64,000 nucleotides of DNA, from positions 310,001-374,000 of the forward strand of contig JAPMXV010000001.1 of the NCBI GenBank assembly GCA_026936335.1. Reading direction: 5' to 3'. Below the pieces are notes generated by a model. That model made no database searches. It was not told the DNA's origin and saw nothing but the letters and a program-made list of their open reading frames with translations. Below are positions 4,427 through 22,604 of this stretch, one piece after another (the first letter of the stretch is position 1; each line of letters opens with the position of its first letter). The DNA comes from Mantamonas sphyraenae STR306 (lineage: Eukaryota > Protista > CRuMs). A program made the translations under genes and the position numbers.

Positions 4427-7035
4427 ATGTCGGGCGAAGAAGAAGCGGAGGATCCGCGCATCGCCGACATCACAAGGCGCACGGCAGATGCACAGCAGAT
4501 GTGGCACTCGGGAAATGCCGACAAGGCGGCCAAGATGATGTACGAACTGCTGGAAGAGTACATGGGCTTCGAGTTGGATGACGCGCTGGAAGAAAGCAAT
4601 GTCGAGGACGGGGAGCCCTCACCGGAGGCAGATGTTACAGACGACGACGATCAACAGCCACAAGGGGCCAACGTAGCACTGACGTACATTGCCCAGATTC
4701 GTACGTGTGCACGCGAGCAGAGCGGACGAGGGAGCGCGAGCTAACACGCAAAAGTGTGTGTTCACACACGTGTACAGAATTCAACCTGGCGCTCATCCTC
4801 ATGGACATGCGTGCGTTTACAGAAGCCGAGCCGCTGCTCAGCGCAGCCATGCAGACCTTTGAGGAGCAGCTGGGCGAAGAGGATGTGCTGGTGGCGCGTT
4901 GTGCCTCGTGCCTTGCCTTGTGCTGCGGGTTCACAGGTCTGATCCGCCGTGCCGTCGCCCATGCCCAGCGAGGTGTCAGCTTACTCCAGAGCCAGGAAAA
5001 GAAGGCCAAAGAGGATGCCAAAGGCCTGTTGCACATCCAGCTGCCCCTTATGGAGGCGTTGAATGTGCTTGCGCTTGTCTACCACGCAGCAGGCGACTTG
5101 CACACAGCGCACCAGCTGTACCACCGTGTGCTCAAGCAGCTGCGCACCCACTTTGATGACCAACACAGACGCAACCTGCCAGTGCTCATCAACCTGTGTG
5201 CGCTGTATTTGGAGCACGAGGAATATGCCAAAGCCAAGCCGCTGCTCAAACGCCTGCTGGAAATCAAGCGAGTCCACTACGACGACACACACGTCGAGAT
5301 TGCCATCACCCTCAACGACCTGTGCCAATGCTTCATTGCACTCAACGACGACCCCAAAGCCGTCGAGAAGCTGCTCGACAAGGCCCTCACTGTCCTGGGC
5401 TGCTCCGCCGAGCACATCCTCAGCAACACCTTGCCCCGCAGCGATTCCTCCGCACGCGCAAACAACACCAGCGGTGGACGCAAACACAAAAACAAGCTGT
5501 GGAAGCTGACCAGGATAGCCTCCCACAAGCTGGGTGCACCCACGGTCTCTCCCGAGCTCCTGGCACACGCACGGGCCTACCCGCTTATCCTCCTGCGAAC
5601 ACACATCACCACCAACCTGGCCATGGTTAAAAAGACCCAAGAGGAATTTGGCGTCGCCGAGGCCCTGTACCGCGATGCCCTCAACATTCTGGCGCATGTG
5701 TGCGGTCTGGACAACAAGCTCACCGAGTTTGCTCTCCTGAGCTACATTGCCCTCGTGACACACATGCACAACCTTCAACTGCCCATTGTGTGTCGTCCCA
5801 AGTGGATTGACGACGACGACGCGCCGGTGTGCATGAACACCACCTGTGGCCGCTCGTTTTCCTGGACCCAGCGCAGGCACCATTGTCGCAACTGCGGACG
5901 CGTGTTCTGCTCCAACTGCGCCAACATCTACGTCCGCCTGCCCCTCTTGGGCTACATAGACCAGGTGCGCATCTGCACCCTGTGTCACACCCTCCTCGCA
6001 AAGCCCTCCAGCATCTACGCCGACGTGGACCGTGTCACCTCAGATTTTGTCGACCACTCCACGCCCCACCTCGCACACCTCTTTCGCACTTCTGTTCTTT
6101 CCATCATTGAGCGCTTCACGGGCGACAGTGACCACGACGGCACTCAGGCCGCACGCTTGCCTCCGTCCACCTCGTCCTCCACCTCCTCCTCCTCGTCCTC
6201 CTCCTTCTCTTCCACACCTACCAAGCTGACCACGCAACCGTACGAGGAGGATGACAGGGTTGGTGCAGCAGAAGACAACAGTGGGGATGCACGCTCCAGC
6301 CAGCCCTCGTCAGCACACACCTCGCCCGAAGGAGGGTCGGGGCGCGACACAACCTCGCCCAGCGATCACAAGCTCATGCGCTCCCTCAGCACAAAGGTCC
6401 ACGAACTGATGCAAAGCAATCTGAGCATGGACGTCTCAGAATCCGAGTCCACAGACGTGTACGTGGATGCGCGCGAAACACAGCCAAGTGCAGACAGCGA
6501 TGACGCCGACGAGACACACTCCACAGCCCCTCGCTATCCAACTGGCGCCACAACCGCCTCCATGCGTGCACAGGGTTCCCTCCTCGTCCAACTCAACACC
6601 ATGGACCCTTTCACGAGCAACTCCTCCATGTCTGGAGACGAGTTTTTCTCCAGCTCCTCCGTCACCGGCCGCTATGCAGGCATCTACTCGCGCTCGTTTG
6701 CAAGTGGTGACCTTGGCCTTTCAGGCGCAAACGCATCCACAGAGATGCTCCTGGGCAGTTCTGTGCAGGAGATTGGCGACGTCCTCAGCACCGAGTTTGC
6801 CGACGTCTCCTCTTCCCTCCGCTCCACAGGAACCGCGTTTTCGTTTTCTTCGCGCGGCGGTCCACCCACACCCAAGAAGAAGCAGAAGAAACAGAAGAAC
6901 AGGGATGGCGCAGGCACAGGCGATGCACAGGATGCAAAGGGACGCACCTTGTTTGCAAAACGCCCTCCACGTCCCGATCGAGGTGCTGGCGCCGCCTCGC
7001 AACCCGTTGCAGACGACTCCATGCTCATTTTGTGA
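4427..7035 (+). CDS. TPR-repeat (kinesin-light-chain-like) protein with a FYVE zinc finger
   Basis: Intron 4701-4777. TPR repeats (AEPLLSAAM, AKPLLKRLLEI, AEALYRDALNI). FYVE signature WIDD...RRHHCRNCGRVFC...RIC at ~5791-6000. Ser-rich tail. Confidence 0.85.
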
Positions 7036-7050
7036 CGACAATGTGGAAGC

Positions 7051-9208
7051 CTAGATTTGTTTCAGCTGGGAAATCGTCGCCACGAGCTTCTCCTCGACGC
7101 TACGCTGCACAGACGTATCCTTGTTCACGCGAGGCCATACATACCCGTGCTTGGGCGCAGCCTCTTCACACCGCTTCACAAGCTCCTCTTGCTTGTCTTT
7201 GTTGCGGTGGGCCAGCGAAAACTGATAGTACGCCGCCCAACTGTCTCCGTTGTCTGCATCCAATGCCACCGCACGTTCGAACCACGTCTTGGCGTCCTTG
7301 TACAGCCGCGATCGCACAAACACCTCTGCCACCGCAACAAACACGTACGGATCCTGCTCGCACGCCTTGAGAGCGTCCATGCTCTTTGTCTTTTGCTGTG
7401 GCCGCGGAGCGGCACGGATGTTGTACGCCCAAAGCAGTCCCGAGCGCGGGCACTCGTCCACACTCAGAGCTTTGGCCAGCAGCGAGGCAGCAAGTTGTGC
7501 CGTGCTGTGCTTCGCCTCCAGTCGCACACTTTCCAACCACAGCACGTCGTTCTTCGGGTTGCGCAGCCTGCCCTTTTCCAGGATTGACCGTGCGCGACTG
7601 ACGTCTCCCTGCTCTTCCTCCAGATGAGCCAGCGACAGCCACAGCGGCACGCTCTTGGGACAGTTCTTGATACCCCGGCTCAGCGTCTCTCGCGCCATCT
7701 CCACGTCGCCCTCCTGCAGTTCCAGCTGCCCGGCCATCAGCCACAGCTTGTCATACTCCGCAAACTGATCGATGCCATCTTGCAGCATGGTTCGCTGCTG
7801 TTCCACGTCACCCAGCTCGCGATAAAGCTGCGCGGAACGCATCCACACACGCGGCGTCGAGCACTCTTTCCGCGCCAGCTCGGCCAGCTTCAGCGCACGC
7901 TCCATCTCGTCCGTCTCCTTCTCCAGATCCATGGCTGCCAACCAAATCTTCTCACTGTCCTTGTTGGCCGCAAATGCATCCTCCAGAATCATTTGTGCCT
8001 CCTGTACGTTGCCACGCGACCACTGCTCTCGCGCAGCCATCAGCCACAGGTCCTCTGCTTGCGGACAGTATCGCACTGCCTTTTCCAGCAGCTCCTGCAG
8101 CGCATCGTGTTCGCCGGCCGCCTTTTCCAACTCCGCCGCTTTCTTCCACAGCGTTTCCTGTGCAGGAAACTTGGTCAGCGCGTACTCGTAGATGCTGCGT
8201 GCCGTCTCGGTTGCCCCGTGCGCTTCACACACGGCCGCATCCTCCATCCACGTCACCAGTCTGTCCTCCTCCTCCACGTTATGTTCAATCACAGCACGCA
8301 CAATCGAGCGGCACGTGTCCACAAAGCGCACCCCCTCCGAGTCGCGCTCCTCTGCCGTGCGTGCCTCCTCCAGCCACTTGTCTCTGTCCACCACGACCCC
8401 CTTCTTGCGGAACGACTTGATCGCACGCTGCACAATCTTGTCCACCATTTTCGGCTGCCCTGCCGTCTCTTCCAGTTTGGCTGCTGTGATCCAGATGCGC
8501 ATGTCACCTGGCACGGCCTTGCGGGCGTCGTTCAACACATTGCGTGCCTTGTCGTACGTCTCCAGCTTTGCCAGCGCCAGCCACAACGGCACCGACGACG
8601 GAACCTCCTTTACCGCCTCTGACAGCATAATCAGCCTGTCTTGATCACTCTCTTCCAAACTCACTGCAGCCTGCCACAACTTGACCGAGTTTGGCACGTG
8701 CTGCAGAGCCTGTCGCAGCACGGTGCGCTTTCCACGCGGTTCGGTCTCCAGCTCCGCCGCACGCATCCAAATGTTCACCGAGTTGGGAATTGCCTTGACA
8801 GCTGCTGCCAGTCGCCGCTTGGCATTCTCCGGTGTGTGCAACCGCGACGCTTCCAGCCACACATCCTCGTTGGTTGCGCACTGTTTGCACGCACGGTCAA
8901 TGATCTTGCGTGCCTCGCTCAGCTTGCCGTCCAATTCCTCAAGGCGAGCGTACGACACCCATCCAGTGGCATGGTCTGGCGTCGTCTTGACAACGGAGCT
9001 CAGCAACGTTTTCGCCTTTTTCATGTCTGCCACGTCGTAGTCCTCCGGCCGCTGCGCCTTTTGCATCGAGGTCAGGTAACCCTTGGGGTCCACCACCGTC
9101 TGGCCACTCACGCTGTCCGACAGCGAGTCCAGCTTGACGCCCAGGTACTGATTGCGCGCATCACCAATCTGCGTCAAGTCCTGCGCAATCCTGGAAGAGG
9201 AGGACGAA

Positions 9209-9240
<32 letters not shown>

Positions 9241-9950
9241 TGCAGACTCCAACGATGAAAAGTGCTCCTGTTCGCGGCGAGCCTTTTCCAGCAGCGACTC
9301 GGGCGCCTTGTAGAAACGTTCATACCGCGGGTTCTCCTTGTACTTCTGTGTGAGGGAGTAGTCGCCGATGTCCGGGATGGCCGCCCACTCGCTCTCGCTG
9401 ATGGACGCCAGGTCTCGCTTGAGGTCGGCAAAGGTGGAGCTGATTTTGGGGTTGCGTGCGAGCAGCGCCTCTTGCTCCGCCTTCTCAGTGGCTTCGCGCT
9501 GCTTCTTGCGTCGCTTGTCCATGTGTTCTTCCACGGCCTGGTACACACGGTCTGCTTCGTCGTCATCCTCGTCATACACCGCGTTGTGGTCCACCAGTGT
9601 TTCGCCCTGGCCACTAAACTCGTCAAATTGCCCGTTTTCCGCCGCCTCCATCTGCTCACGCTTGCGCTTCTCTCTTTCCTGCGCCGCCGCCTGGCTGTCT
9701 GCTTGTGCTTTCATGGGTCCAATGTCTCCTCGCGTGGTGAACCCGGATGCTCTGTGTGCGTCCACAACGGTGGCCGGGTGCCAAGTGGCCGGGTGCTGAC
9801 ATGTAAGCGTGCGTGGTCCGATCCTCACTCTCCGCTCCGCTCAGGAGATCGATCTCCAGGCACAACCTACCCGCGTCCAACACCAGCCACGTATCCTATC
9901 GGTGCTTTCTGCTTCAGGAACGCTTTGTTGGCGTAGTTTTGCTGAAACAT
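7051..9950 (-). CDS. PRPF6: Pre-mRNA splicing factor PRP6 (U5-102K)
   Basis: Exon 1 (MFQQNYANKAFLKQKAPIGYVAGVGRG) and intron 9752-9870 join to ASGFTTRGDIGP. Motifs FADLKRDL, SDSVSGQTVVDPKGYLT and a long HAT repeat array. Confidence 0.96.
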
Positions 9951-10014
9951 GCTCATGGCTGCCAGTCACCTGGTCCGGCCCGCGCCTCCAGCCCATGCAA
10001 GACAAGGGTACTTG

Positions 10015-13000
10015 ATGCATCGTTCGACTCTTGCATTGCTGGTGGCTCTCGTGTGCATCATTTGCGTCGTGGAGCGCGTGCATGCGTACGGCGAACTCGC
10101 ATGCAAAACGGGCGTGCCGCCGCCCCTGCCGGTGGTGGAGCCGCTGCCGCAGCCTTTGGTGGTCCACACCCTTTGCCGGCAGTACAGTGGCTACACAATC
10201 ACATTCAAGAATGCCACAGACACATTTTGCAACCATCCCATGGTCCAATGGGCTCCAGATGACTACTGTGACGCCTTTGTGGGGCTGAACTCGGTCATCG
10301 TGGATTCACAAGGCGTGGGCACCGTCAGCGTGACTCCCCCGCCCTTCATCAGGCGCCCGTACAACGGCACATTGCGCCTCAGCATTGACGGAGGCATCCG
10401 TTGGGTCGATGCAGGCCCGTTTGTCATGGTCCCCAAGGCCAACGGCTTTGTGGTGGACTCGATCAGCGTTCCGGACACGCTTGCATTTCCCCAGCAACAA
10501 ATCACCGTGGTCATCAACTACACTGACCCAAGCATCCAAAACAGGTTTTACACCGTCAACACAAAGGTGCTGAACTTCAACGACCAAATCCATACACAGG
10601 TGCTCACGGTAGACACGCCGTCACCTGGCCAAGCAACGTTTTCCTTCACGCTCGGGGATGACTTTTTCAAGCAGGCCTCACTCAAGCTTTCCCCTGCCCG
10701 CCTGGGCATCAGTACCAATTGTTTCGATTGGGCTGATCACGATGCCCATGGCAATCCTCTCGACCTGCCGTTAGCGCGAGTAAGCAACACTGCGCAGATC
10801 ACAGGCTTCCAGCCCAATCCAGTGACTGCCTGGAACTCGTCGGTGGAGGTCACCATTAAGGGCAAAAACTTTATTCCCAAGCAGTTTCCAATTCTGCAGT
10901 CGATGAACGTGCAGGTGAACATGTCCCAGAACACGGTGCAGGGCTTCATCAAGTGTGATTTCAACTCGGCCTCCCTCAACGCCAAAATCATCAACGACCA
11001 GACCGCCGTGTTTACTCTCGATTCGTCTGGTTCCGGATGCTCTGACGTCCCACTCACCGTGGCCGTGTCCAACAACGGCGGCTACGACTGGTCCAACAAG
11101 GCAGTGTTGCCCATAGCCGACGCGCCCAACACGGCTTCCATCCACTCCTTCTGGCCAACCAAAGTGCCCATGAACGAGCAAACTGATATTACGGTGGTGG
11201 GCACTGGATTCAAAGCTGTAGGCAGAACACTTGCCTTCCAAGTGAACGACCAATCGGCCACGTTCAACACACACGTTTGCAACGATTCAGTGGCTGTCAT
11301 CACGTTTACGTATGCCCAGGTTCCCACAAGCACCCTCTACGTCACCAACCGTGCACAAAACCAGCTCTTGGGGAGCAAGGGTCTCCTTGGCAAGTACTCG
11401 TCGACAAACTGGGCGACCGCCCCTGTCAACATCACCTTTGTGCCCACAAAGATGAAGAGCTGGACAGCCGATTGGATGCCTGCACACCCCAACAACATCA
11501 CGCACTTGCTGCCGTATGTTGTCATCCCGCTGGCGGACACCTCTCAAGGCCTGGACGTCAATGTCGTTGGTGGCCATCCACCGTTCCGCTTCTCCGTGCT
11601 CCACAAGGGGTTCAACCACACATTGGACCCAAACAACCCGTACTACAGTTACAGCGTAAGGCAGGGCACATTCACCATCACCCTGAACTGCAACCGCGCA
11701 CGCATGGACGGCACGATGGTGTTCCAGGTGGATGACACCAGCGGCAACACAGCTCGCTTTAGCGTCAACCTCAACACATCCTCGGTGCACTGTAAGAGGC
11801 CTACGTACAGCAAGGTGGTGTCGCTCCCTCACATGCCCATGGCTGCAGGTAGAGTGGCCGACCACCCTCTGAAATGGGACACTTTCCGTGATCGCAAAGA
11901 CCTCACCTTTGCTGGCATCAATCCACTGTACATGTCGTTTGTCGCCTACTTCCGAGATTACAAGACCAGCTACACGAAATGGGGCATGTTTCTCTCGATG
12001 TCATCATTCACAGAACGAAGCTACGACACAGTTGCCACAAACCCCAACGTGTACCACGGGAACAACGACATCAACGTCCCTCTGGCACCTGTTGGCACGT
12101 ACAACCTTAGCTTGGTTGACGTGTCCAGTTGCACCATCGTGGATATCCCGACGCCGGTGACAGTGAGCTTCAACGACGATGGCATTGTCGAGTATCTCTT
12201 GCAGGTGCTGGCGGCTGGTTTCGTCGGTTTGCTGGTGGTCATCTACGTACACTGTGTTCGCAACCGCGAACACCTGGTACCCAGAGAGCAGAAGGAGTCT
12301 GGTATCGATGTTGCGACCGTGCCGTCCGTGCGCCAGACTCTGAAGAATGTTTTCACGCGGATGTGGACGACCACACACCGCGAGCTCATGCAACATGCGG
12401 ACCCCGAGCAACGTGCACGCCTTTCCTTGGATCGGCGCATGTTGCGCACAATGGCAGGCCTCACCGTGCTCTCGTTGGCGTTGCTGATCTTCTACGTGGC
12501 AATTGGCCGCAATGTGCCCAACCTGAGCGTGTTGACTGCAGCCAACATCCTGGACGACTTGCAAGACGACGCCACAGCATTGACTGTGGCTTGGATTGTT
12601 GTGACCTTGTCTGTTTTGGGTCTGTATATGTTGTGCTGGGTGCTGTGGCACGGATCCCGGCGCACACGCGCAGAGCGCGACGAATACGGCCACTACCAGC
12701 TTCTGGTGGTCCGCAACATCAGTCCTTTGCTGACATATGGCCAGGCACGTAGCGCACTCGAACATTTGACGAGCATCCCCGTTCTGGATGCGAAAGTCGT
12801 CTTCCACGACGGTGTCGAAAGCACCCTCATTGAACAGCCGGACGATGATATGGTGGGTTTCCACGCCATGACCATTACGATGTTGTGGGACAAGGAGACA
12901 GCAGACCACATGAAGCAGTTTGTGGTGCCCCTGAGTTCGGCACGCAGATGGATGCGTGCCATGTGGGGCGGGTCTCGTGGAAGCTCAAGCGACGAAGACT

Positions 13001-14355
13001 CGTCCGTCGAAGCAGAACAGCAAAACGTCCTGATGGCCAGTCAAGGAGGTGTGGCAGTGGACACTTCGTCCTGGACGTTCTTCCTGGCAGGCAGCGAAGA
13101 CGAACTGCTGCTGCCAAGCTTGCAAATCGGCCCACTGGAGCGCTTTCTGCGCAAGCTCCTCGTTGCTGTGATCATTTTCATTGTGGGCATCCTTCTCTTC
13201 CTCACTGTGTTTTTCATCGACGTGTACGGCGAGGTTGACACCTTTCTGATCACAAACAAGGAAAACAGCGTGACATCGCAGGCGGCAAACATGGCAAACA
13301 TGAAAGGGCTTGGCCAGGCAAGCGCCAAGGGCATTTCGGCCATTGCAGTGTTTATCAACTTTGCCGTGCTTCCCGTGCTCTCGCGTGTGTTGTCCAACTT
13401 TGAGGGGCACCTGACGCACTCGAGCCGCGAGCGTTCGATTCTGCAGAAGCGCAGCGGGGGCATCTTTTTGTTTGGCATCATTTCTCCTCTTCTGGTGGCC
13501 GTTTTCCTCGCGTTCATTCGCACATTGTCCGCAGGCATGTTCATCGCCGGCGTCGCTCGAACCGAGTACGCAAACGCACTCACGAGCGCAGGGCGCACGT
13601 TTGGTGAGGTGCTCACCCATTTCTTTGTTACCTATCTACTGTCTGCAATCATGCTGTCGCCTGTGTCGACGCTGTTGCAACCAGGCATTCTGTTCCGGAC
13701 ACGAGTGCGCAAAATGTCGCTCTCCTCGGCTGCGGTGCTCAGGCAGCAGACGTTGACCAACCATGTAGACCGCATGCACGCTGTGTCGCTAAGTCTAATG
13801 ATGGGTGCCATGGTGCCTCTTGTGGTGCCCATGGCACTCCTCTTTCTGGCTGTTCGCAATGTCCTGGACAGGTTCATGCTCTGCTACCCCACTTACTGGA
13901 CATACACGTATTGTGGTGCAGAGCAGGACAACACAGAGCTGCAAGAGCACGAGTCGGGACTGACAGATTCCAATGATGGCGAGCAGGACGACTACAACGA
14001 CGAGGACGACGACGAAGACGACGACGAACCGCAGAGTCAAAGTGTTCGCACAGTCGAGTCGTCGAACCGCCGCCTCCGCACCATGCGAGCAACACCCAAG
14101 CTCCTCAACAACCGCATCACACGCAGTTCGGTGACCATGCTCCTGTTTGCAGCAGCTGTCGTGCCGATTGTGTTTGCGCTGATGGTTTTCGTCAACACCT
14201 TCAACCTCTTCAGCCTCATCTCCGGTGCACCAGGGTCACAGGCCAACGTGGGTGCCGAGCAGCTCTCTGCCTTTCTGTACTTTGCGCTCGTGCTGCTGTG
14301 CATTTCCGTGATGCGTTTCCTCTGGCGCACGTTCTTCCGTGTCCGAATCGTCTGA
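10015..14355 (+). CDS. OSCA/TMEM63 (CSC1/DUF221)-like channel with signal peptide and large IPT/TIG-like ectodomain
   Basis: Signal peptide MHRSTLALLVALVCIICVV. Repeated IPT-type motifs (LRLSIDGGIRW, LGISTNCFDW, VAVSNNGGYDW). C-terminal OSCA-like motifs LLVVRNISP, LQIGPLERFLRKLLV, LSNFEGHLTHSSRERSILQK and MVPLVVPMALLFLAVRNVLDRF, with ~10-11 TM segments. Confidence 0.75.
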   Translation: MHRSTLALLVALVCIICVVERVHAYGELACKTGVPPPLPVVEPLPQPLVVHTLCRQYSGYTITFKNATDTFCNHPMVQWAPDDYCDAFVGLNSVIVDSQGVGTVSVTPPPFIRRPYNGTLRLSIDGGIRWVDAGPFVMVPKANGFVVDSISVPDTLAFPQQQITVVINYTDPSIQNRFYTVNTKVLNFNDQIHTQVLTVDTPSPGQATFSFTLGDDFFKQASLKLSPARLGISTNCFDWADHDAHGNPLDLPLARVSNTAQITGFQPNPVTAWNSSVEVTIKGKNFIPKQFPILQSMNVQVNMSQNTVQGFIKCDFNSASLNAKIINDQTAVFTLDSSGSGCSDVPLTVAVSNNGGYDWSNKAVLPIADAPNTASIHSFWPTKVPMNEQTDITVVGTGFKAVGRTLAFQVNDQSATFNTHVCNDSVAVITFTYAQVPTSTLYVTNRAQNQLLGSKGLLGKYSSTNWATAPVNITFVPTKMKSWTADWMPAHPNNITHLLPYVVIPLADTSQGLDVNVVGGHPPFRFSVLHKGFNHTLDPNNPYYSYSVRQGTFTITLNCNRARMDGTMVFQVDDTSGNTARFSVNLNTSSVHCKRPTYSKVVSLPHMPMAAGRVADHPLKWDTFRDRKDLTFAGINPLYMSFVAYFRDYKTSYTKWGMFLSMSSFTERSYDTVATNPNVYHGNNDINVPLAPVGTYNLSLVDVSSCTIVDIPTPVTVSFNDDGIVEYLLQVLAAGFVGLLVVIYVHCVRNREHLVPREQKESGIDVATVPSVRQTLKNVFTRMWTTTHRELMQHADPEQRARLSLDRRMLRTMAGLTVLSLALLIFYVAIGRNVPNLSVLTAANILDDLQDDATALTVAWIVVTLSVLGLYMLCWVLWHGSRRTRAERDEYGHYQLLVVRNISPLLTYGQARSALEHLTSIPVLDAKVVFHDGVESTLIEQPDDDMVGFHAMTITMLWDKETADHMKQFVVPLSSARRWMRAMWGGSRGSSSDEDSSVEAEQQNVLMASQGGVAVDTSSWTFFLAGSEDELLLPSLQIGPLERFLRKLLVAVIIFIVGILLFLTVFFIDVYGEVDTFLITNKENSVTSQAANMANMKGLGQASAKGISAIAVFINFAVLPVLSRVLSNFEGHLTHSSRERSILQKRSGGIFLFGIISPLLVAVFLAFIRTLSAGMFIAGVARTEYANALTSAGRTFGEVLTHFFVTYLLSAIMLSPVSTLLQPGILFRTRVRKMSLSSAAVLRQQTLTNHVDRMHAVSLSLMMGAMVPLVVPMALLFLAVRNVLDRFMLCYPTYWTYTYCGAEQDNTELQEHESGLTDSNDGEQDDYNDEDDDEDDDEPQSQSVRTVESSNRRLRTMRATPKLLNNRITRSSVTMLLFAAAVVPIVFALMVFVNTFNLFSLISGAPGSQANVGAEQLSAFLYFALVLLCISVMRFLWRTFFRVRIV

Positions 14356-15081: not shown

Positions 15082-18000
15082 CTACGCGTTGGCCAGTTGG
15101 TCGAGCACAAGGTCAACAAGACCCTGGGAGGCGGCCTGGTTGGTGGTGCGTGCTGTGACGCGCACGCGCTGGTTGTTTGCGTCTACCTCGACCAGGAGCA
15201 GACACCCGACACTGCCGTTGTTAAACGTAAACAGGCCAGCCGAGTACACCGTCGACTGGTTGCCGTCGATGTCGTGGAAGGTCATGTTGAGGTTGGCCAG
15301 CAGCGTCTTGACGCTGTCTGAGCTCACACCTGGCGCGGGGCCTACGCTCTGCACCTGGCTGCCGTTCTGTGCCAGTCCTGTCCAGCGCTTGCCAAAGTCT
15401 GCGGAGCTAAACGTCACGCCAGACACAAACTTGGTCATGACCAGGGGCAGCTTGACGGCGTGCGCGTACTGCGTCCCCGCGCTGCTGAACGACAGAGTGA
15501 CCACGGGCGGCTCGCTGAACGGAGCGGTGACCATGACGTCAAACGTGTGCTGCAGCTGCTTGCGGCTGGGGATGGAGTTCAGCGCACCCGTCACCTTGAA
15601 CTTCATGCACTCCGAGTCCTCCAAGGCCACGTTGAAGTCGGACAGCTCCGAGCCCAGCTTGTTGCCCACAAACAAGGCCACCTTGCCAAACTGCTTCTGG
15701 AACATGGCCTGGTAGCCGACTTGCACCTGCTGTGTGTTGAGCAGCACCGCCTTGTTGGTGGTGCAAAGCGCACGGAATTCGCTCAGGTTTTCCGGCTCTT
15801 TGCTGTTTCCACTGCTGCCTGCGTCCAGCGTGTCAAACAGAGACAAGCCACTGCTGCTGCTGCTGCTTCCGCTGCTGCTGCTGCTGCTGCCGCCTCCTCC
15901 GCCGCCGAGCAGGTCGATCAAACCGCCGTCGCTGCTGCTGGACTCGGGCTCCTCAGCACCGATGAGCTCGCCGTCGCCCGACTCGTCTTCCTCCTCCTCC
16001 TCGTACTCTTCGCCCTCCTCCTCGTCTTCGCCACTCTCCTCGCCTTCTTCTCCCTCGGCACCTTCCTTGTCGGCGATGGTCTCGAGGTTCCAAGCGCGGC
16101 GATCGACAGTGTCGTCCTTCTCGACAAAACGGCGGATGAGCGACGACTCGCGGTCGGGGAACGGAGGCATGATGTCCAGTACGGTGGGCATGATGTCTTC
16201 GTTGACCTGCAGGAGGCGCACATACTCGTTTGCGCGCTGTTGGAGTTCGGTGTCGATGTGCTCTGTGCAGTTGTTGAGAAAGTCCAGGCAGTCGTCGGTG
16301 ATCTCCGGGTACAAGTTGATGAACTTGACGATGGTGGAGAGCATGACAGCCTGTGTGTTGGGCTGGCTCAAGGCAAACAGGTCGTTGACAATGAAGAACT
16401 GGTCTTCGGGGCCACTGCCTTCCTCCTCGGCAATGAGGTTGCCGTACTCGCCAAGCAGATAGGCGCCAATGAGACGGGTTGTCTCCAGAGAGGCAGCCCC
16501 CTCTGCAACGAGGACCTTGAAAATGGTGTAGGCAGCGTAGAACTGCAGGTTTTCGTCAGCGTTGGTGACGATCTGGACGACGCGGTACCAGATGTCGTCG
16601 GAGACGTACTCGCCGGCCTTGGAGATGAGGTTGAGGATGGTGTCGACGTACCAGGTGAGATCGGGCGGGAACTTTTCGGCAAGGATGGCAATCTTGAGCA
16701 CGAGTTCTTCGCGGATGTCCAGGTCCGAGGTGACGAGGTACTCCAGAAGGCGTTCGACAATCTCCTTTGCGTTGTCCTTGTCGGTCATGACGTAGAGGAG
16801 GTCAAGAGCGCGCTTGCGGATGCTGATGTCCGAATCTTTGAGCGAGTCCAGGACAGTGCTTTGGTGCTTCTGAATGAGTTCCATGGAACCCTGGAGGGTG
16901 GCCAGATGGGCCATGGCCTCGAGGGTGAGGTAGCGCACGTTCGTGTCCTTGCCCGAGAGGAAACGGCCGAGGAGGACGGCAGCCTGGACGAGGAGCTCGT
17001 TGTCACAGTCGAGACGGATGATGAGGTTGATGGCCTCAAAGAGGATGGAGTACACAATGTTGACGCGGTTGGGCGACGAGCGCGAGCTGAGGTCGGCCGT
17101 CTTGAGAATGGAAGAGAGGACGTCGATGAGGTGCATCCTGAGCACGCGCTCCTCGGGCGGTGGGAAGTACTGGAGGCAGCGCAGAAGCTTGACTTGCAGC
17201 CAGGGCGCAACGACGCCGTAGTACACGTACTCGTTGTACTGCGAGGAGGAAAACTCGCGGCCGAGGATGATCTTGTGGAGGAGACGCACGCACTGAGGCG
17301 CCACAGTCTCGTACTCCTCGGGAGCAGCGGAGACGAGGCCGAGGACAAGGCTCATGACCGAAGTGAGCACGCCCAAGTTGTTGGTGGACGTAAGAAGCAT
17401 GACGAGACGTTCCTCCCATTCCTCCGGGATGATGAGGTCGGGATACTTGCGGAAGAGGCGCAGGAGACACAGGGCGCTCTTCTTGCGGATGACAGCGCCG
17501 GTAGTGCTTTGGGGGTGAGAGGGGAACGGGAGCGGACACGGTGAACGCGGGGTGGGTGGGCGGAGGGTAGGGTGTGGAGAGTGTGAGTTTGGATTTCGCC
17601 GGAGACAAAAAACACCCTGTGGAAGAGGACCTACCCCATGAGCATCTTTTGAACCATGGGACCTGAAGATGGGACACGGTGGTGAGCATGTGGGCGAGGG
17701 CAGGGTGAGCGAGGGTCTTTGTGTGAGCGTGTGTGCGGGGAAAGGTGGCGGCCAGGAAAAAAACTGCGGTGGAAGAGGGCAAGGGCTCGGCACGGCGGGC
17801 GTCGCACGGGACGCACGAGAACGAGAGACATACCGAGGGCCTGTGCGGTGTCCTGGGAGCCGATGTTTGCCACTGCTCCGAGGGCCACGCACTGGTAGAG
17901 CTCAGAGGAGCTCTGGAGATCCTCGCCGATGGTGTTGATGATGAGCATGAGCAGATCGCTGCTTTCGTCGAGTAGGACCGAGGTGGCTAGATAGCCGACG

Positions 18001-18497: not shown

Positions 18498-19370
18498 TCA
18501 TTTCGCCTCCTTCTCCGACACAAGCACATACTCGCGTGAGCTTTGTCCGAATCGAATGACATCCTGAGAGCGCAGCTCGTAGAAGCGCCTGCTTTTGATG
18601 GGGGCTGCGTTGACGGTTGTGCCGTGGGTGGATTTGAGGTCGATGAGATAAGGCCGGACCACTGTGTCGCCGTCTTCGTTGACTACGCGACGGAACTGAA
18701 GGACGGCGTGCTGGCTGCTACACGAGAGGTGGTCTGTGGGCACGTCGACGACACGGCGATCTCGGCCAAACAGAAAGTGGCTCTTCTGGTGGAGATGCAG
18801 CTTCTCCAACAGCTCTTCGCCACGGAATACATACATACGAAAGGGTTCGTCGGGCATGCAGCCATCGTCGCACTCGGCATACTTGAGTTCGACGCCCGAC
18901 GGCTTGGTTTCCGCGTCCTGCGCGCGACCGCCCCCTCCACCGCTGTCCAGGGCCCCCGAAGTCCCAAAGTCCACCTTTGCCTTTTTGACAGTGCCGCCCT
19001 CGCCGGCATCTGCTTCTGTTCCGTCGCTGGGCTTGCCCCACTCCATTTTGGGGCCGCCACCGGCGACGAGCGCGCTAATGTTGGACGCTGCTGCCTTGGC
19101 CGCGGGTGCAGCTGACGAGGAAGAGGAGGACGAGGAAGACTGTGTGTTGCTGTGTACATTGGCCACAGGGATGGAATTACTGCCACTGCCTGTGCTTGAG
19201 GCTGCGTCGTCGCGCTTGCGCTTTCTGTCGCGCGCCTCGTGTTGCTTCGCTCTGCGAGCAGCCTCCTCGGCCGCCTTTTGCTCCCGCTCTGCCTTTTCGG
19301 CCATGTCGGCCAATCTCTGGGCGACCTGGGAGTCGCTGATGTGTGGGTTTGTGTCCCAGCGGCTTGTCAT
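18498..19370 (-). CDS. SNIP1: FHA-domain RES-complex protein SNIP1/Pml1
   Basis: GVELKYAE, LFGRDRRVVDVPTDHLSCSSQHAVLQFR, RPYLIDLKSTHGT, DVIRFGQSSREYVL. Confidence 0.9.
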   Translation of the reverse strand: MTSRWDTNPHISDSQVAQRLADMAEKAEREQKAAEEAARRAKQHEARDRKRKRDDAASSTGSGSNSIPVANVHSNTQSSSSSSSSSAAPAAKAAASNISALVAGGGPKMEWGKPSDGTEADAGEGGTVKKAKVDFGTSGALDSGGGGGRAQDAETKPSGVELKYAECDDGCMPDEPFRMYVFRGEELLEKLHLHQKSHFLFGRDRRVVDVPTDHLSCSSQHAVLQFRRVVNEDGDTVVRPYLIDLKSTHGTTVNAAPIKSRRFYELRSQDVIRFGQSSREYVLVSEKEAK

Positions 19371-22081
19371 GCGGGTTCTGTTGTGTGGCGCTGGGCGACA
19401 TCGAGGAGCAGGCGACGCAGGAACTGCACCTGGGTGCGTTGCGTCTGTTCCGGTTGCATGGAGTTGATGCGTCTGTTTGCAATCAGCATGCGCACGCGGT
19501 TTGCTGTGCGCTTGTCGCCAAGCTCGTGAAAGGCGTTCAGCAGGAGCTCGAGGAGGGTGACGTCGTGCATAAACTGCAGGTAATCGTGGTGCAGATTGGC
19601 CAGGTTTTGCAGAAGCATGTTGGCGGCGGTGGACAGCAGGCTACTGCGCTCCTTGGTGCGGCTGAGAAGGAGGACGAGCGTGGCTTCCACCGCGCGGGCC
19701 CCTTTGGTGAGACTGTAGGCGAAGCGGCCGAGAGTGCCGTCGTCCATTCCCGATCGATGCAGGTCGTCGAGAGCCTGGGCCACCTGTGCGTCGTGGTGGC
19801 AGTTTGCCCAGCCGTCGCAGATGAGCGCTGCCGATTGGATGTACAGGTGACAGGCGCGCGCGTGGTGGGACTGCATGTGATGATAATCGGCCAGAAGGAG
19901 GGCAATAAATGGATCGGTACCGTCGAGCAGCTCGTGCAGACGGGCCACGGTCTGCATGTTGGCTTTCAGCAATCGTGCGCGTTGCCTGCTGCTGATCGAC
20001 TTTGGCAGTGCACTCAGCAGAGCTGCAGCTGCGTTCATGTGCAGTGTGTCTGTGGACCATTGGGATGCGTCACGTGTGATGACATCCGCGCCCGTTTGCA
20101 TGGAGAAAAACATGCACGCGAGGGCACGCAGCAGCGTGGGGGACTCGAGATGGCGCAGCAGCCCCGTCGACGTGTTCCATTCCAATGCAGGTGTAGCTGT
20201 GCGGTTGGATGACGACGAAGAGGATGACGTGCTGGACGAGGACGATTCCTCCGTGTTTTTCTGTCCGCACAGACAATCGACAATGGCCAGAGCGACATCG
20301 TTGAGGTCATTTGTAGCGACGGAGGAGGAGGACGATGATGATGATGAGGAGGAGGAGGAGGAGGAGGAGGAGGAGGAGGAAGCACGGACGAGGCGTCCGA
20401 GACGATGCAACGCTGTGGCCATGGTGCACGCTTGCCTGGCAAGGAGAGTGCTGGAGGCGAGGGCGTGTGTGATGGCCCCAAGCAATTGGTCGCCATGCTG
20501 TTGCAGACCGACACATTTGGCCAGAGTGGCGTACAGCCTCTCCTCACCAAACGCACGCACACGGTCCGGAGCCTGAAGAAGGCGCAGGGCGCGGTCGACG
20601 TCTGCGTCGGCCAGGGCACACAAGAGAGTGCATGCGTAGACATCGTTGTCGTCGGTGCGTAGGATGTCGACTTCCTGCAGCAGCTCCTGGGCGCGTGCGT
20701 ACTGCTGGCGGGTGACGAGCTGCTTCACCGTTTCCTCCACCTTGCCCACAGGCAGGCGGATGCGCTTGCGGTCATGCGTCGCCTCGCTATCGGCTGTGTC
20801 TGCGGATGACGACGAATCTGTGGAGCGAGAGCGCTTCGTGCCGAGCTGGGGCAGGTGTACAGAGAGCTGGTCGCTGGCGCCCGAGTCGTCGTCGCGGTGT
20901 GTGTACCCAATGCTGTGTTCACGGTCGCGCTGAAGCATGTCGCGGTCAGATTGGGACATTGCATCGATGAACGGGGCCAGACGCGGTGTGTCGAGCACAG
21001 CCCAGGCTGACGGAGTGTCGATCTTGCGCACCATGTTGCAGATGAGGGAGGCCATGTTGGCAACGGCAACAGCGTCGTGGCGAAGCTTGAGTATCCTGGA
21101 GGCATATTCGACGCAAGTGTTCAGGTGGTGATCGCTGTCCAAGGCGCTTGTGGGCAGGAGAAGCTGTTTGTGAACGCTGCCGTGCAAGGCGTTGCACACA
21201 CGCACAGGATCGCCCACGAGCCGCTCCAGCAACGCACGGTAGCGTGTCCCCACGCTGGGTTGTGTCGATGACGTGTCTTGCAGCAAAAGGCTGACAAGAG
21301 TGGCCTCGGCGTCTGTGTCGTCGCTGCTGCTCGTCCGCTTGCCCTCTGCGCCGCCACCCTCCACTTCTCTGCGGGCCCACTCGAGCTGCTGAAACAGCGA
21401 TGTGTCGGAAACAGAGTCGGGTTTGCGGTGAAGCATACCCAAGCTGGCTGTGTGCAACTTGTTGCACAGGGCTGCGTCGTCGTCGTCGAGGCCGTCGGCG
21501 TGGCTCGATTGCAAAGTGCGCGTGTGCTTTACACAGGCGTCGTAGTCACGCAGAGCGAAGCTGGCCTGAGCGCACTCCATGTGGACACGTTGCAACATGG
21601 ACGCTTCGGCCTGGGAGCCGTGGTTGGTCAGCCAGGCCTCCAGGGCCGCCAAAGCGTCACGCAGTGCTTCGAGGGCCACTGCCGTGTTCTGATCTGCAGC
21701 TTGGGCCTGGGTCACGCCCAGCTGATAACGCATGAGAAACAGGCCTGAGGAATGCACGTGTGCGGCTTCAGGATACTCCTGTGCCCAGCGTAGGACGCGT
21801 TCAGGCTGGGTGAGCTGGTCGACAAGCTCGTCCAGCGTCAGATGCGTGGTTTGGTTGACGATGCGGCCCACGAGTTGTTTCAGCGCAGCGGTGCGCTTTG
21901 GATTCACTTCTGTCTGGCGCACCATCTCGTTGATGAGCTCGCAGGGCAACGGCGTGCCTGACGCGTAGTGCTGCGGGTCTTGGTCGCCGTTCCACAGCGC
22001 AATCACGTCGTCCAGCAACGAGCGATTCAGCACATAGTCGAACCATGCCGTGGAAGGCGACACCTCCATGTGTTCCTGCAT
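19367..22081 (-). CDS. INTS8: Integrator complex subunit 8
   Basis: N-terminal WFDYVLNRSLL parallels human WFEFLLEESLL, and PLPCELINEM parallels PAPVQLIVQF. The C-terminal ADYHH...ACHLYIQSAA and FMHDVTLLELL...HELGD parallel ADIYF...ALHYYLQAGA and YIWDVTILEYL...HKRGE. Start taken at MQEHMEV. Confidence 0.78.
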   Translation of the reverse strand: MQEHMEVSPSTAWFDYVLNRSLLDDVIALWNGDQDPQHYASGTPLPCELINEMVRQTEVNPKRTAALKQLVGRIVNQTTHLTLDELVDQLTQPERVLRWAQEYPEAAHVHSSGLFLMRYQLGVTQAQAADQNTAVALEALRDALAALEAWLTNHGSQAEASMLQRVHMECAQASFALRDYDACVKHTRTLQSSHADGLDDDDAALCNKLHTASLGMLHRKPDSVSDTSLFQQLEWARREVEGGGAEGKRTSSSDDTDAEATLVSLLLQDTSSTQPSVGTRYRALLERLVGDPVRVCNALHGSVHKQLLLPTSALDSDHHLNTCVEYASRILKLRHDAVAVANMASLICNMVRKIDTPSAWAVLDTPRLAPFIDAMSQSDRDMLQRDREHSIGYTHRDDDSGASDQLSVHLPQLGTKRSRSTDSSSSADTADSEATHDRKRIRLPVGKVEETVKQLVTRQQYARAQELLQEVDILRTDDNDVYACTLLCALADADVDRALRLLQAPDRVRAFGEERLYATLAKCVGLQQHGDQLLGAITHALASSTLLARQACTMATALHRLGRLVRASSSSSSSSSSSSSSSSSSSSVATNDLNDVALAIVDCLCGQKNTEESSSSSTSSSSSSSNRTATPALEWNTSTGLLRHLESPTLLRALACMFFSMQTGADVITRDASQWSTDTLHMNAAAALLSALPKSISSRQRARLLKANMQTVARLHELLDGTDPFIALLLADYHHMQSHHARACHLYIQSAALICDGWANCHHDAQVAQALDDLHRSGMDDGTLGRFAYSLTKGARAVEATLVLLLSRTKERSSLLSTAANMLLQNLANLHHDYLQFMHDVTLLELLLNAFHELGDKRTANRVRMLIANRRINSMQPEQTQRTQVQFLRRLLLDVAQRHTTEPA

Positions 22082-22150
22082 GGTTGGACAAAGAGCGAGT
22101 GCGTTTGTTTTGGCGGCAGCAGAGCTGCGACTGCGCCGCCAACAATAGAA

Positions 22151-22318
22151 TTGCCTCGCCCACATTCTCCGTACAAGCTGCGGCAGCTCACACTCGCTGG
22201 CTTGTCCCATGGGATTGAGGCAAAGCAAGCCCCGCGGCGGTTTCATCCCCAAAGGGCCCAGGCATTCCATTCTTTGCCCCGAATCCGACTCGGCATTGAC
22301 CACCTGCCTGTGACATCT
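22151..22318 (+). ncRNA. Box H/ACA snoRNA, probably U17/snR30 (SNORA73) family
   Basis: 5' hairpin (ttgcctc/gaggcaa, ccca/tggg, acaagc/gcttgt); H box AAAGCA at 22222-22227; a short internal hairpin; a 3' hairpin (caggca/tgcctg) with AUUCCAU and GACCACC in its pocket; ACA at 22313-22315 followed by TCT and a T-rich tract. Confidence 0.6.
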
Positions 22319-22604
22319 TTCTTTCGCCAATTTCCCTGCCCTGTGTGATGTGCATGCGTGCATGAGTACTGTTTGCGTGGGATTGCTTGTCCATGGCGTG
22401 GCGCAACGACCCGTACGTGACACCGAGAAAGATCGAGGTGCATGCGCCAGGCGCAGAGTCTTTCCCCACCCGTCCACACACGCACACACAAAATGAACAT
22501 GCTATTGCTGTGGATCCCGTCTGTTGTGCACACATCGTGTTGTGCGTTGAACGTCGTCTCGTCTTGTCTTCGTTCGCCCGCCCAAGCTCAAAACAACCGC
22601 AGGT

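Follow-up and report, generated by a model that had tools for sequence, protein, structure and literature searches.

The gene and its N-terminal ectodomain

The gene described here lies in a 64,000-nucleotide stretch of the genome of the protist Mantamonas sphyraenae STR306 (contig JAPMXV010000001.1, positions 310,001 to 374,000 of the forward strand; hereafter the window), and coordinates below are positions in the window unless another locus is named. A stop-free frame of 1468 codons plus the stop, which carries no intron signal, occupies positions 9949..14355 (+). The 1468-amino acid product of this open reading frame (ORF) joins a signal-peptide-like segment and a large ectodomain with IPT/TIG domains to the transmembrane (TM) helix TM0 and body of OSCA/TMEM63, a family of mechanosensitive channels that is the largest in eukaryotes. 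A first-pass annotation, made from the sequence alone, had proposed this combination within one ORF, and it was borne out by Pfam, by profile-profile and fold comparison, and by the predicted topology. It is highly probable that the anatomy is that of one gene encoding a signal-peptide-led ectodomain of ~700 residues with at least two IPT/TIG modules, followed by TM0 and an OSCA/TMEM63 body.

The coding signal was assessed along the whole ORF. By arithmetic from base composition, the chance of 1468 open codons in random sequence of 59% GC is ~2e-22. The G+C content at third codon positions (GC3) was ~0.70 throughout (0.66-0.78 across 450-nt windows) and that at second positions (GC2) was ~0.40; the neighbouring genes have GC3 values of 0.71-0.78, a pattern matched by the ORF. 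Only two hexamers of the 5'-splice-like form GT[AG]NGT were present, both within continuing, partly conserved coding sequence, and neither the splice hexamers nor the GC3 windows revealed an intron-like break in 9949-14355. Read from the sequence, 10015-14355 is one intronless gene, as the first-pass annotation had it. The start proposed there, position 10015, corresponds to Met23 of the ORF product and opens a signal-peptide-like segment (residues 23-46, 10015..10086, +). From Met23 the sequence reads MHRS, then a 15-residue hydrophobic run, then the cleavage-like site VHA-YG, and hydropathy placed a hydrophobic core at residues 28-46 with a peak of 2.34. Met23 is likely the true start of the ORF.

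The exoplasmic domain that follows spans residues 47-745 (699 amino acids; 10087..12183, +) and contains 11 cysteines and 11 N-X-S/T sequons, with no helix-rich or hydrophobic stretch. Just two more sequons occur in the other 723 residues, one of these in the TM1-TM2 loop, predicted to face outside; in all, 12 of the 13 sequons fall in parts predicted to be exoplasmic. With the whole protein as query, Pfam TIG (PF01833) scored 26.3 bits against a cut-off of 20.9, in two stretches. The first IPT/TIG domain, which carries an insertion (residues ~283-376; 10795..11076, +), scored 20.6 bits as a segment alone (E 4.6e-4), just below the cut-off, and was also recognized by a profile built from 20 TIG domains of the same genome. 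The second (residues ~397-471; 11137..11361, +) scored above the cut-off by itself (23.5 bits, E 5.4e-5) and matched the own-genome profile with an i-E of 2.4e-8. Applied by hhalign and hmmsearch, the own-genome profile found no further TIG domain in the ectodomain. Of the several IPT/TIG repeats originally placed at ~10090-12180, two therefore stood; "several" was an overstatement, and the rest of the ectodomain matches no family.

BLASTP revealed no internal repeats in the ectodomain, and neither a sequence match in the Protein Data Bank (PDB) nor a paralogue of the ectodomain in the organism's own genome was found. Its language-model neighbours in the ESM Atlas were all Ig/TIG-like, but their scores (0.82-0.86) lie below the level at which they can be trusted. 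The ectodomain is likely all-beta and Ig-like. Its last stretch, VTVSFNDDGIVEY, is followed directly by TM0, essentially with no linker; the ectodomain ends at most ~5 residues from TM0.

The OSCA/TMEM63 channel body

Residues 746-1468 are a divergent OSCA/TMEM63-family body of 11 helices. Pfam RSN1_7TM (PF02714) matched residues 1076-1316 with 38.2 bits against a cut-off of 28.7 (E 1.4e-9), and hhalign to a profile of nine canonical OSCA-family members covered residues 1040-1323 with 99% probability (E 7e-18). The only meaningful sequence matches in the PDB were TMEM63B and TMEM63C. Of the family profiles that the first-pass annotation had named for a HMMER search, RSN1_7TM and TIG thus scored above their cut-offs, and RSN1_TM and PHM7_cyt had no match.

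Residues 740-1468 were modelled with AlphaFold2 (AF2) on a 15-sequence alignment, giving a low-confidence model (mean predicted local distance difference test score (pLDDT) 54, predicted template modelling score 0.54). A Foldseek comparison, also put forward in the first-pass annotation, returned only TMEM63 or OSCA structures among its 34 matches with E <= 0.001. VIA-align gave Z 26.7 to human TMEM63A (520 residues aligned, model 3-722 against chain 44-718) and Z 22-25 to the remaining TMEM63 and OSCA entries, and the top ESM Atlas clusters, at a template modelling score of 0.61, were those named TMEM63C and CSC1-like.

An identity as TMEM16/anoctamin was considered and rejected. Pfam Anoctamin (PF04547) scored 29.7 bits on the same stretch as RSN1_7TM, just above its cut-off of 28 and lower than the 38.2 bits of RSN1_7TM, so it is not the best profile. 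TMEM16 structures ranked below all TMEM63 and OSCA structures and did not cover TM0; VIA-align to TMEM16 and TMC structures gave Z 19-21, with alignments that start only after TM0.

Hydropathy predicted 11 TM peaks in OSCA order, TM0 and ten more, with Arg/Lys clusters at the predicted cytosolic flanks of TM0, TM1 and TM2, a positive-inside pattern. TM0 (residues ~746-768, peak 749-767; 12184..12252, +) is predicted to run N-out/C-in, aligns with TM0 of canonical OSCAs and of the TMEM63/OSCA structures, and is directly followed by the R/K-rich VRNREHLVPREQK. TM1 and TM2 (peaks 835-853 and 880-898; 12436..12648, +), placed by hydropathy and alignment, enclose a short acidic outer loop with the sequon N858. 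In a MAFFT alignment TM0-TM2 line up with the TM0-TM2 of canonical members, as they do in the structural alignment. The cytosolic domain between TM2 and TM3 (residues ~901-1065, ~165 amino acids; 12649..13143, +) was placed by alignment, and its end lies within the hhalign match. It opens with 'YQLLVVRNISP', which MAFFT aligned to 'hTVxVxxlP', the first strand of PHM7_cyt domains; the central part of this segment was modelled at pLDDT < 50. OSCAs dimerize via their cytosolic domain. The TM3-TM10 pore module (residues 1066-1468; 13144..14352, +) is supported by RSN1_7TM at 1076-1316, hhalign, Foldseek, VIA-align and the ESM Atlas matches.

Within the pore module, the predicted cytosolic TM8-TM9 loop carries a D/E-rich, low-complexity insert (residues ~1320-1385; 13906..14103, +) with 21 D+E in 89 residues, modelled at pLDDT < 50. 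The insert contains DDYNDEDDDEDDDE and has no counterpart in any aligned relative.

The TM6 motif 'FFVTY' (13621..13635, +) has the form F-F-x-x-Y. When aligned by HMMER to 8wg3, 8ehx and 8k0b, its residues F1225, F1226 and Y1229 stand opposite F568, F569 and Y572 of TMEM63B and F542, F543 and Y546 of TMEM63C. By mutagenesis, Qin et al. showed that the channel is gated by these three bulky TM6 residues, which face the pore (PMC10636204). Two further motifs are retained, 'LP...FEGH.THS' after TM4 (TM4-5) and 'VP...P' in TM7-8.

The best structural matches are the animal proteins TMEM63A/B/C (CSC1-like; PDB 8wua, 8ehx, 8k0b), with Z 25-27 over 470-520 residues from TM0 to TM10. The protein shares with them the identical TM6 F-F-x-x-Y gate and, as predicted, 11 TM helices, an N-out orientation and a cytosolic segment between TM2 and TM3. 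It differs in having ~745 residues before TM0, where TMEM63 has ~30-45, in the ~65-residue acidic TM8-TM9 insert, and in not being recognized by Pfam RSN1_TM and PHM7_cyt; identity is ~15%. The plant proteins OSCA1.2, OSCA1.1 and OSCA3.1 (PDB 6mgv, 6jpf, 5z1f) have the same fold (Z 22-24) and share the motif of the first cytosolic strand, yet their TM0 lies at the very N-terminus, with chains aligning from residues 1-5. TM6 'FFVTY...QPG' is close to that of the plant-type homologue P0011. A small tree built from the 7TM region placed the protein, on a long branch, in a group with the database matches and one own-genome paralogue (95/95 support) and outside the clade of plant-type sequences, which fell in the other group.

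These comparisons bear on whether the protein is primarily an ion channel. It might instead be a scramblase, or a divergent, non-conducting scaffold in which the OSCA body anchors a receptor or adhesin, and the protein could sit in an endolysosomal or vacuolar membrane, the Ig-like domain then facing the lumen. TMEM63B has lipid-scrambling activity and is located at the plasma membrane and at lysosomes (PMC11753361, PMC13332465), and the long branch, the degenerate motifs, the large acidic insert and the Anoctamin score just above cut-off (29.7 vs 28) would all suit such a protein. Against this stand the retained F-F-x-x-Y gate of TM6 and the 'LP...FEGH.THS' (TM4-5) and 'VP...P' (TM7-8) motifs; the motifs kept from TM4 to TM8, together with the gate, therefore favour a conserved permeation pathway. 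Moreover, scrambling and conduction are not mutually exclusive in the superfamily. We regard a scramblase or scaffold as unlikely.

Relatives, paralogues and genomic setting

The protein searches may leave out the organism's own genome and very near relatives, and their negative results hold outside these. A word-indexed protein search returned no match for the whole protein or for residues 740-1468. The same search with an 11-sequence OSCA alignment retrieved two proteins only, and the modelling alignment is consequently shallow. When residues 269-1468 were searched exhaustively against 1.84 billion representative proteins, nine matches resulted, eight of which are ordinary OSCA-type proteins of 411-1014 amino acids that match only the pore region; the TIG-bearing part of the query had no match in this search. 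The ninth, P0002, was rejected as a relative, being a low-complexity artefact on the acidic insert. No relatives were found in a metagenome contig scan, and an ESM Atlas feature search with the whole protein gave no usable match. The exact sequence, in both start variants, had no database record, the own genome possibly being outside that search.

The first-pass annotation had contrasted the protein with characterized OSCA/TMEM63 channels, in which the extracellular N-terminus is short. This contrast was upheld: in MAFFT alignments TM0 of canonical relatives begins within a few to ~30 residues of the N-terminus, and the structural alignments start at residues 1-5 of OSCA chains and at residues 31-46 of TMEM63 chains. 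A 2026 review describes the domain architecture of OSCA/TMEM63 as remarkably conserved (PMC13494684), and no description of an OSCA/TMEM63 protein with a large ectodomain was found in full-text literature searches. A large IPT/TIG-bearing ectodomain on an OSCA/TMEM63 body is a new architecture for the family, found in no other protein or paper covered by these searches; according to the first-pass annotation, wide prior description would have spoken against its reading, and none was found.

One of the database proteins, P0011 (857 amino acids; source name TIR domain-containing protein, Sphenostylis stenocarpa), is a plant OSCA with a C-terminal TIR domain. The other OSCA fusions met, this TIR domain among them, are therefore cytosolic-side.

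The genome examined comprises 25 Mb in 78 contigs and contains five other RSN1_7TM loci, none of which has an ectodomain. BLASTP against the weakest-scoring own OSCA paralogue (contig C75) gave no match, so the query is not a recent duplicate of that paralogue. A paralogue on contig C5 (L007:5390-9883, +) contains RSN1_TM, PHM7_cyt and RSN1_7TM (155 bits), followed C-terminally in the same ORF by RasGAP and PH domains. Its first exon lies upstream of a spliceosomal intron (L007:5229-5417, with ends GTATGT...CAG), and the two exons were searched separately, not joined. Going by its predicted domains, this paralogue would be a mechanosensitive-type channel joined to a Ras regulator. Another paralogue, on contig C12 (L008:4044-8024, +), has a ~380-residue insert in the cytosolic domain, between PHM7_cyt and RSN1_7TM, which gave sub-threshold zinc-ribbon/UBZ hints only (E 0.02-0.1).

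IPT/TIG domains are massively expanded in this genome, with at least 150 scored matches among 322 candidates in 25 Mb, and TIG-bearing ORFs reach ~10,900 codons free of stops. Ten such ORFs were sampled and seven of them were scanned. Three multipass ORFs (L039:2122-6570, -; L040:2809-7173, -; L041:2183-7399, +; 1455-1739 amino acids) encode two to four N-terminal IPT/TIG domains and then a seven-peak multipass region matching PF06011 (fungal-type TRP/Flc/Pkd2-like), with one score above the cut-off (32.3 bits) and two below it (21.1 and 19.9 bits); one of the three also has SBBP beta-propeller repeats. These proteins have the same design as the query, an N-terminal TIG exoplasmic domain followed by a multipass channel-like module, but their TIG domains are strong (70-123 bits) where those of the query are weak, the membrane module differs, and they show no sequence similarity to its ectodomain. 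In three other ORFs, leishmanolysin (Peptidase_M8) is combined with one to six IPT/TIG domains and a C-terminal TM peak (L035:3144-5489, +; L036:3483-6605, -; L037:2911-6729, +). An SPT23/MGA2-type DNA-binding domain with TIG and ankyrin, plus TM peaks, is encoded at L038:2891-7096 (-); this is an ordinary membrane-tethered transcription-factor architecture, and not every TIG match in the genome is extracellular. The OSCA fusion fits a lineage habit of placing TIG stalks on varied membrane effectors, channel-like ones included. This habit therefore makes a functional fusion more credible, yet it also makes the fusion one instance of a broader pattern.

The genes around the ORF encode a TPR and FYVE protein (4705-7035, +), a PRP1/PRP6-like HAT/TPR splicing factor (7051-9828, -; divergent, its start ~186 bp from that of the ORF), an AP-2 alpha-adaptin (15082-17892, -; convergent) and an INTS8-like, Integrator-type protein (19367-22489, -). 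They are housekeeping-type genes with no functional tie to the channel gene. GC content and long ORFs at first suggested a kinetoplastid, a reading given up in view of the spliceosomal introns and the Integrator-type genes.

The absence of an orthologue of the same architecture from the matches is what would be expected if two genes had been joined by a sequencing or assembly error, or if the ORF were a young, unexpressed chimera, and the genome has introns, so ORF-only models can mislead. On the other side are the 1468-codon stop-free frame with its uniform GC3 and the ~186 bp that alone separate the ORF start from the divergent PRP6-like gene. The topology is also compatible, a signal peptide with an N-out TM0 being the only route to an N-terminal exoplasmic domain on this fold. 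In addition, with TM0 at the junction, neither half would make a complete protein by itself. An artefact or dead gene is accordingly very improbable.

Proposed gating through TM0

TM0, on which the ectodomain is mounted, is coupled to the gate in characterized members of the family. TMEM63C has its N-terminus outside the cell and depends on TM0-TM6 coupling for activity; a V39C/N545C (TM0-TM6) cross-link raised activity, and reduction of the link lowered it (PMC10636204). In OSCA1.2, immobilizing F22 of TM0 by photo-crosslinking prevents reactivation (PMC12346119). The tethered or ligand/adhesion-gated receptor-channel proposed in the first-pass annotation gains mechanistic plausibility from the position of the ectodomain, which ends within ~5 residues of TM0, and from the published link between TM0-TM6 coupling and gating (PMC10636204, PMC12346119).

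A mechanism can be outlined on this basis. The protein would be a mechanically gated cation channel at the plasma membrane, and its ectodomain would bind a partner outside, which could be matrix or wall, another cell, a particle or a soluble ligand. TM0 would be the peripheral helix whose coupling to TM6 controls opening in TMEM63C and OSCA1.2. A pull or binding event on the ectodomain, rigidly joined to the outer end of TM0, would tilt or displace TM0 and so bias the TM6 gate, and this tether or ligand input would be added to the force-from-lipid gating of the family. Domain shuffling is the probable origin of the fusion itself, in a lineage where many surface proteins bear IPT/TIG stalks. 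Taken whole, the anatomy together with tether or ligand gating via TM0 is a tentative reading, to which we give somewhat less than even weight.

Several points weigh against this reading. In the ectodomain, residues 47-282 and 472-745 matched no Pfam family, whether the whole protein or five segments were scanned, and a single-sequence AF2 model (pLDDT 30) was unusable. No orthologue with the same fusion was found outside the own genome and very near relatives. In the channel body, RSN1_TM (PF13967) had no Pfam match over TM0-TM2 even at E <= 10, PHM7_cyt (PF14703) had none in the query, and as a result these two parts are supported by topology, alignment and a low-confidence model only. The fold match is partly circular because the model was guided by the OSCA alignment. 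Identity to relatives is 13-19%, the branch in the small tree of the 7TM region is long (2.1 changes per site), and the cytosolic 'AP.P.DI.W.NL' motif is degenerate. With the channel half so divergent (long branch, low identity, a degenerate motif and missing Pfam matches), channel function may have been lost or changed. Finally, OSCA/TMEM63 gating is described as force-from-lipid, driven by the bilayer without tethers (PMC13494684).

This last point also speaks for a passive ectodomain. The protein would then be an ordinary force-from-lipid channel whose IPT/TIG domain positions it, holds it at adhesion sites, wall or glycocalyx, serves sorting or quality control, or shields it, with no signal passed to the gate. 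Besides the view of the family as gated through the bilayer (PMC13494684), such a role is suggested by the own-genome TIG stalks on leishmanolysin proteases, where no role other than spacer or anchor is open to them, and by the fast evolution of the ectodomain and its lack of detectable relatives, as expected of a surface spacer. Yet no flexible linker separates the ectodomain from TM0, and TM0 is the gating-coupled helix (PMC10636204, PMC12346119); for these two reasons a mechanically neutral mass of 700 residues on TM0 is unlikely. We consider a passive ectodomain possible, though distinctly on the improbable side.

Gating of the pore by the ectodomain through TM0 would have a counterpart in the complex of TMC-1/2 with the protocadherin-15 tip link (PDB 7usy), whose pore has the same TMEM16/TMC/OSCA superfold (Z 21). 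Force is believed to reach the TMC pore through a chain of beta-sandwich modules outside the cell. The tether of that complex is a second protein and the pore protein lacks TM0, whereas here the presumably beta-rich ectodomain is in the same polypeptide and mounted on TM0. The first-pass annotation had drawn an analogy to polycystin-1. It holds for the architecture, since polycystin-1 and fibrocystin are likewise membrane proteins with a large Ig-like/PKD or IPT/TIG ectodomain and a link to mechanosensory signalling. It does not extend to the domains themselves: Pfam scans of the whole protein and of five segments found no PKD, REJ, GAIN/GPS, PLAT or TRP-type pore domain, the pore module is unrelated to that of polycystin-1, and fibrocystin is single-pass.

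At its most far-reaching, and doubtful as it stands, the proposal is that the protein is a natural, single-polypeptide tethered OSCA/TMEM63, in which force or ligand from outside would act via an Ig-like stalk on TM0 and from there on TM6. Within one pore family, gating would then be force-from-lipid in plants and animals and force-from-tether or ligand-driven in this protist, which would possess a cis-fused counterpart of the TMC/tip-link system as part of a lineage-wide toolkit that sets IPT/TIG stalks on different channel bodies (OSCA and the PF06011 TRP-like module).

If the ectodomain is passive, the protein still represents a new domain architecture for the family, of modest interest. 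A gating-coupled TM0 carrying a 700-residue extracellular domain is a natural construct in which tether or ligand gating can be set against membrane-tension gating in one pore family, and it poses the question of whether a tether or ligand acting from outside can drive or tune the OSCA/TMEM63 pore. Alongside the TIG-TRP-like fusions of the same genome, it suggests how receptor-channels may be put together in a unicellular eukaryote, by the shuffling of a single expanded extracellular module.

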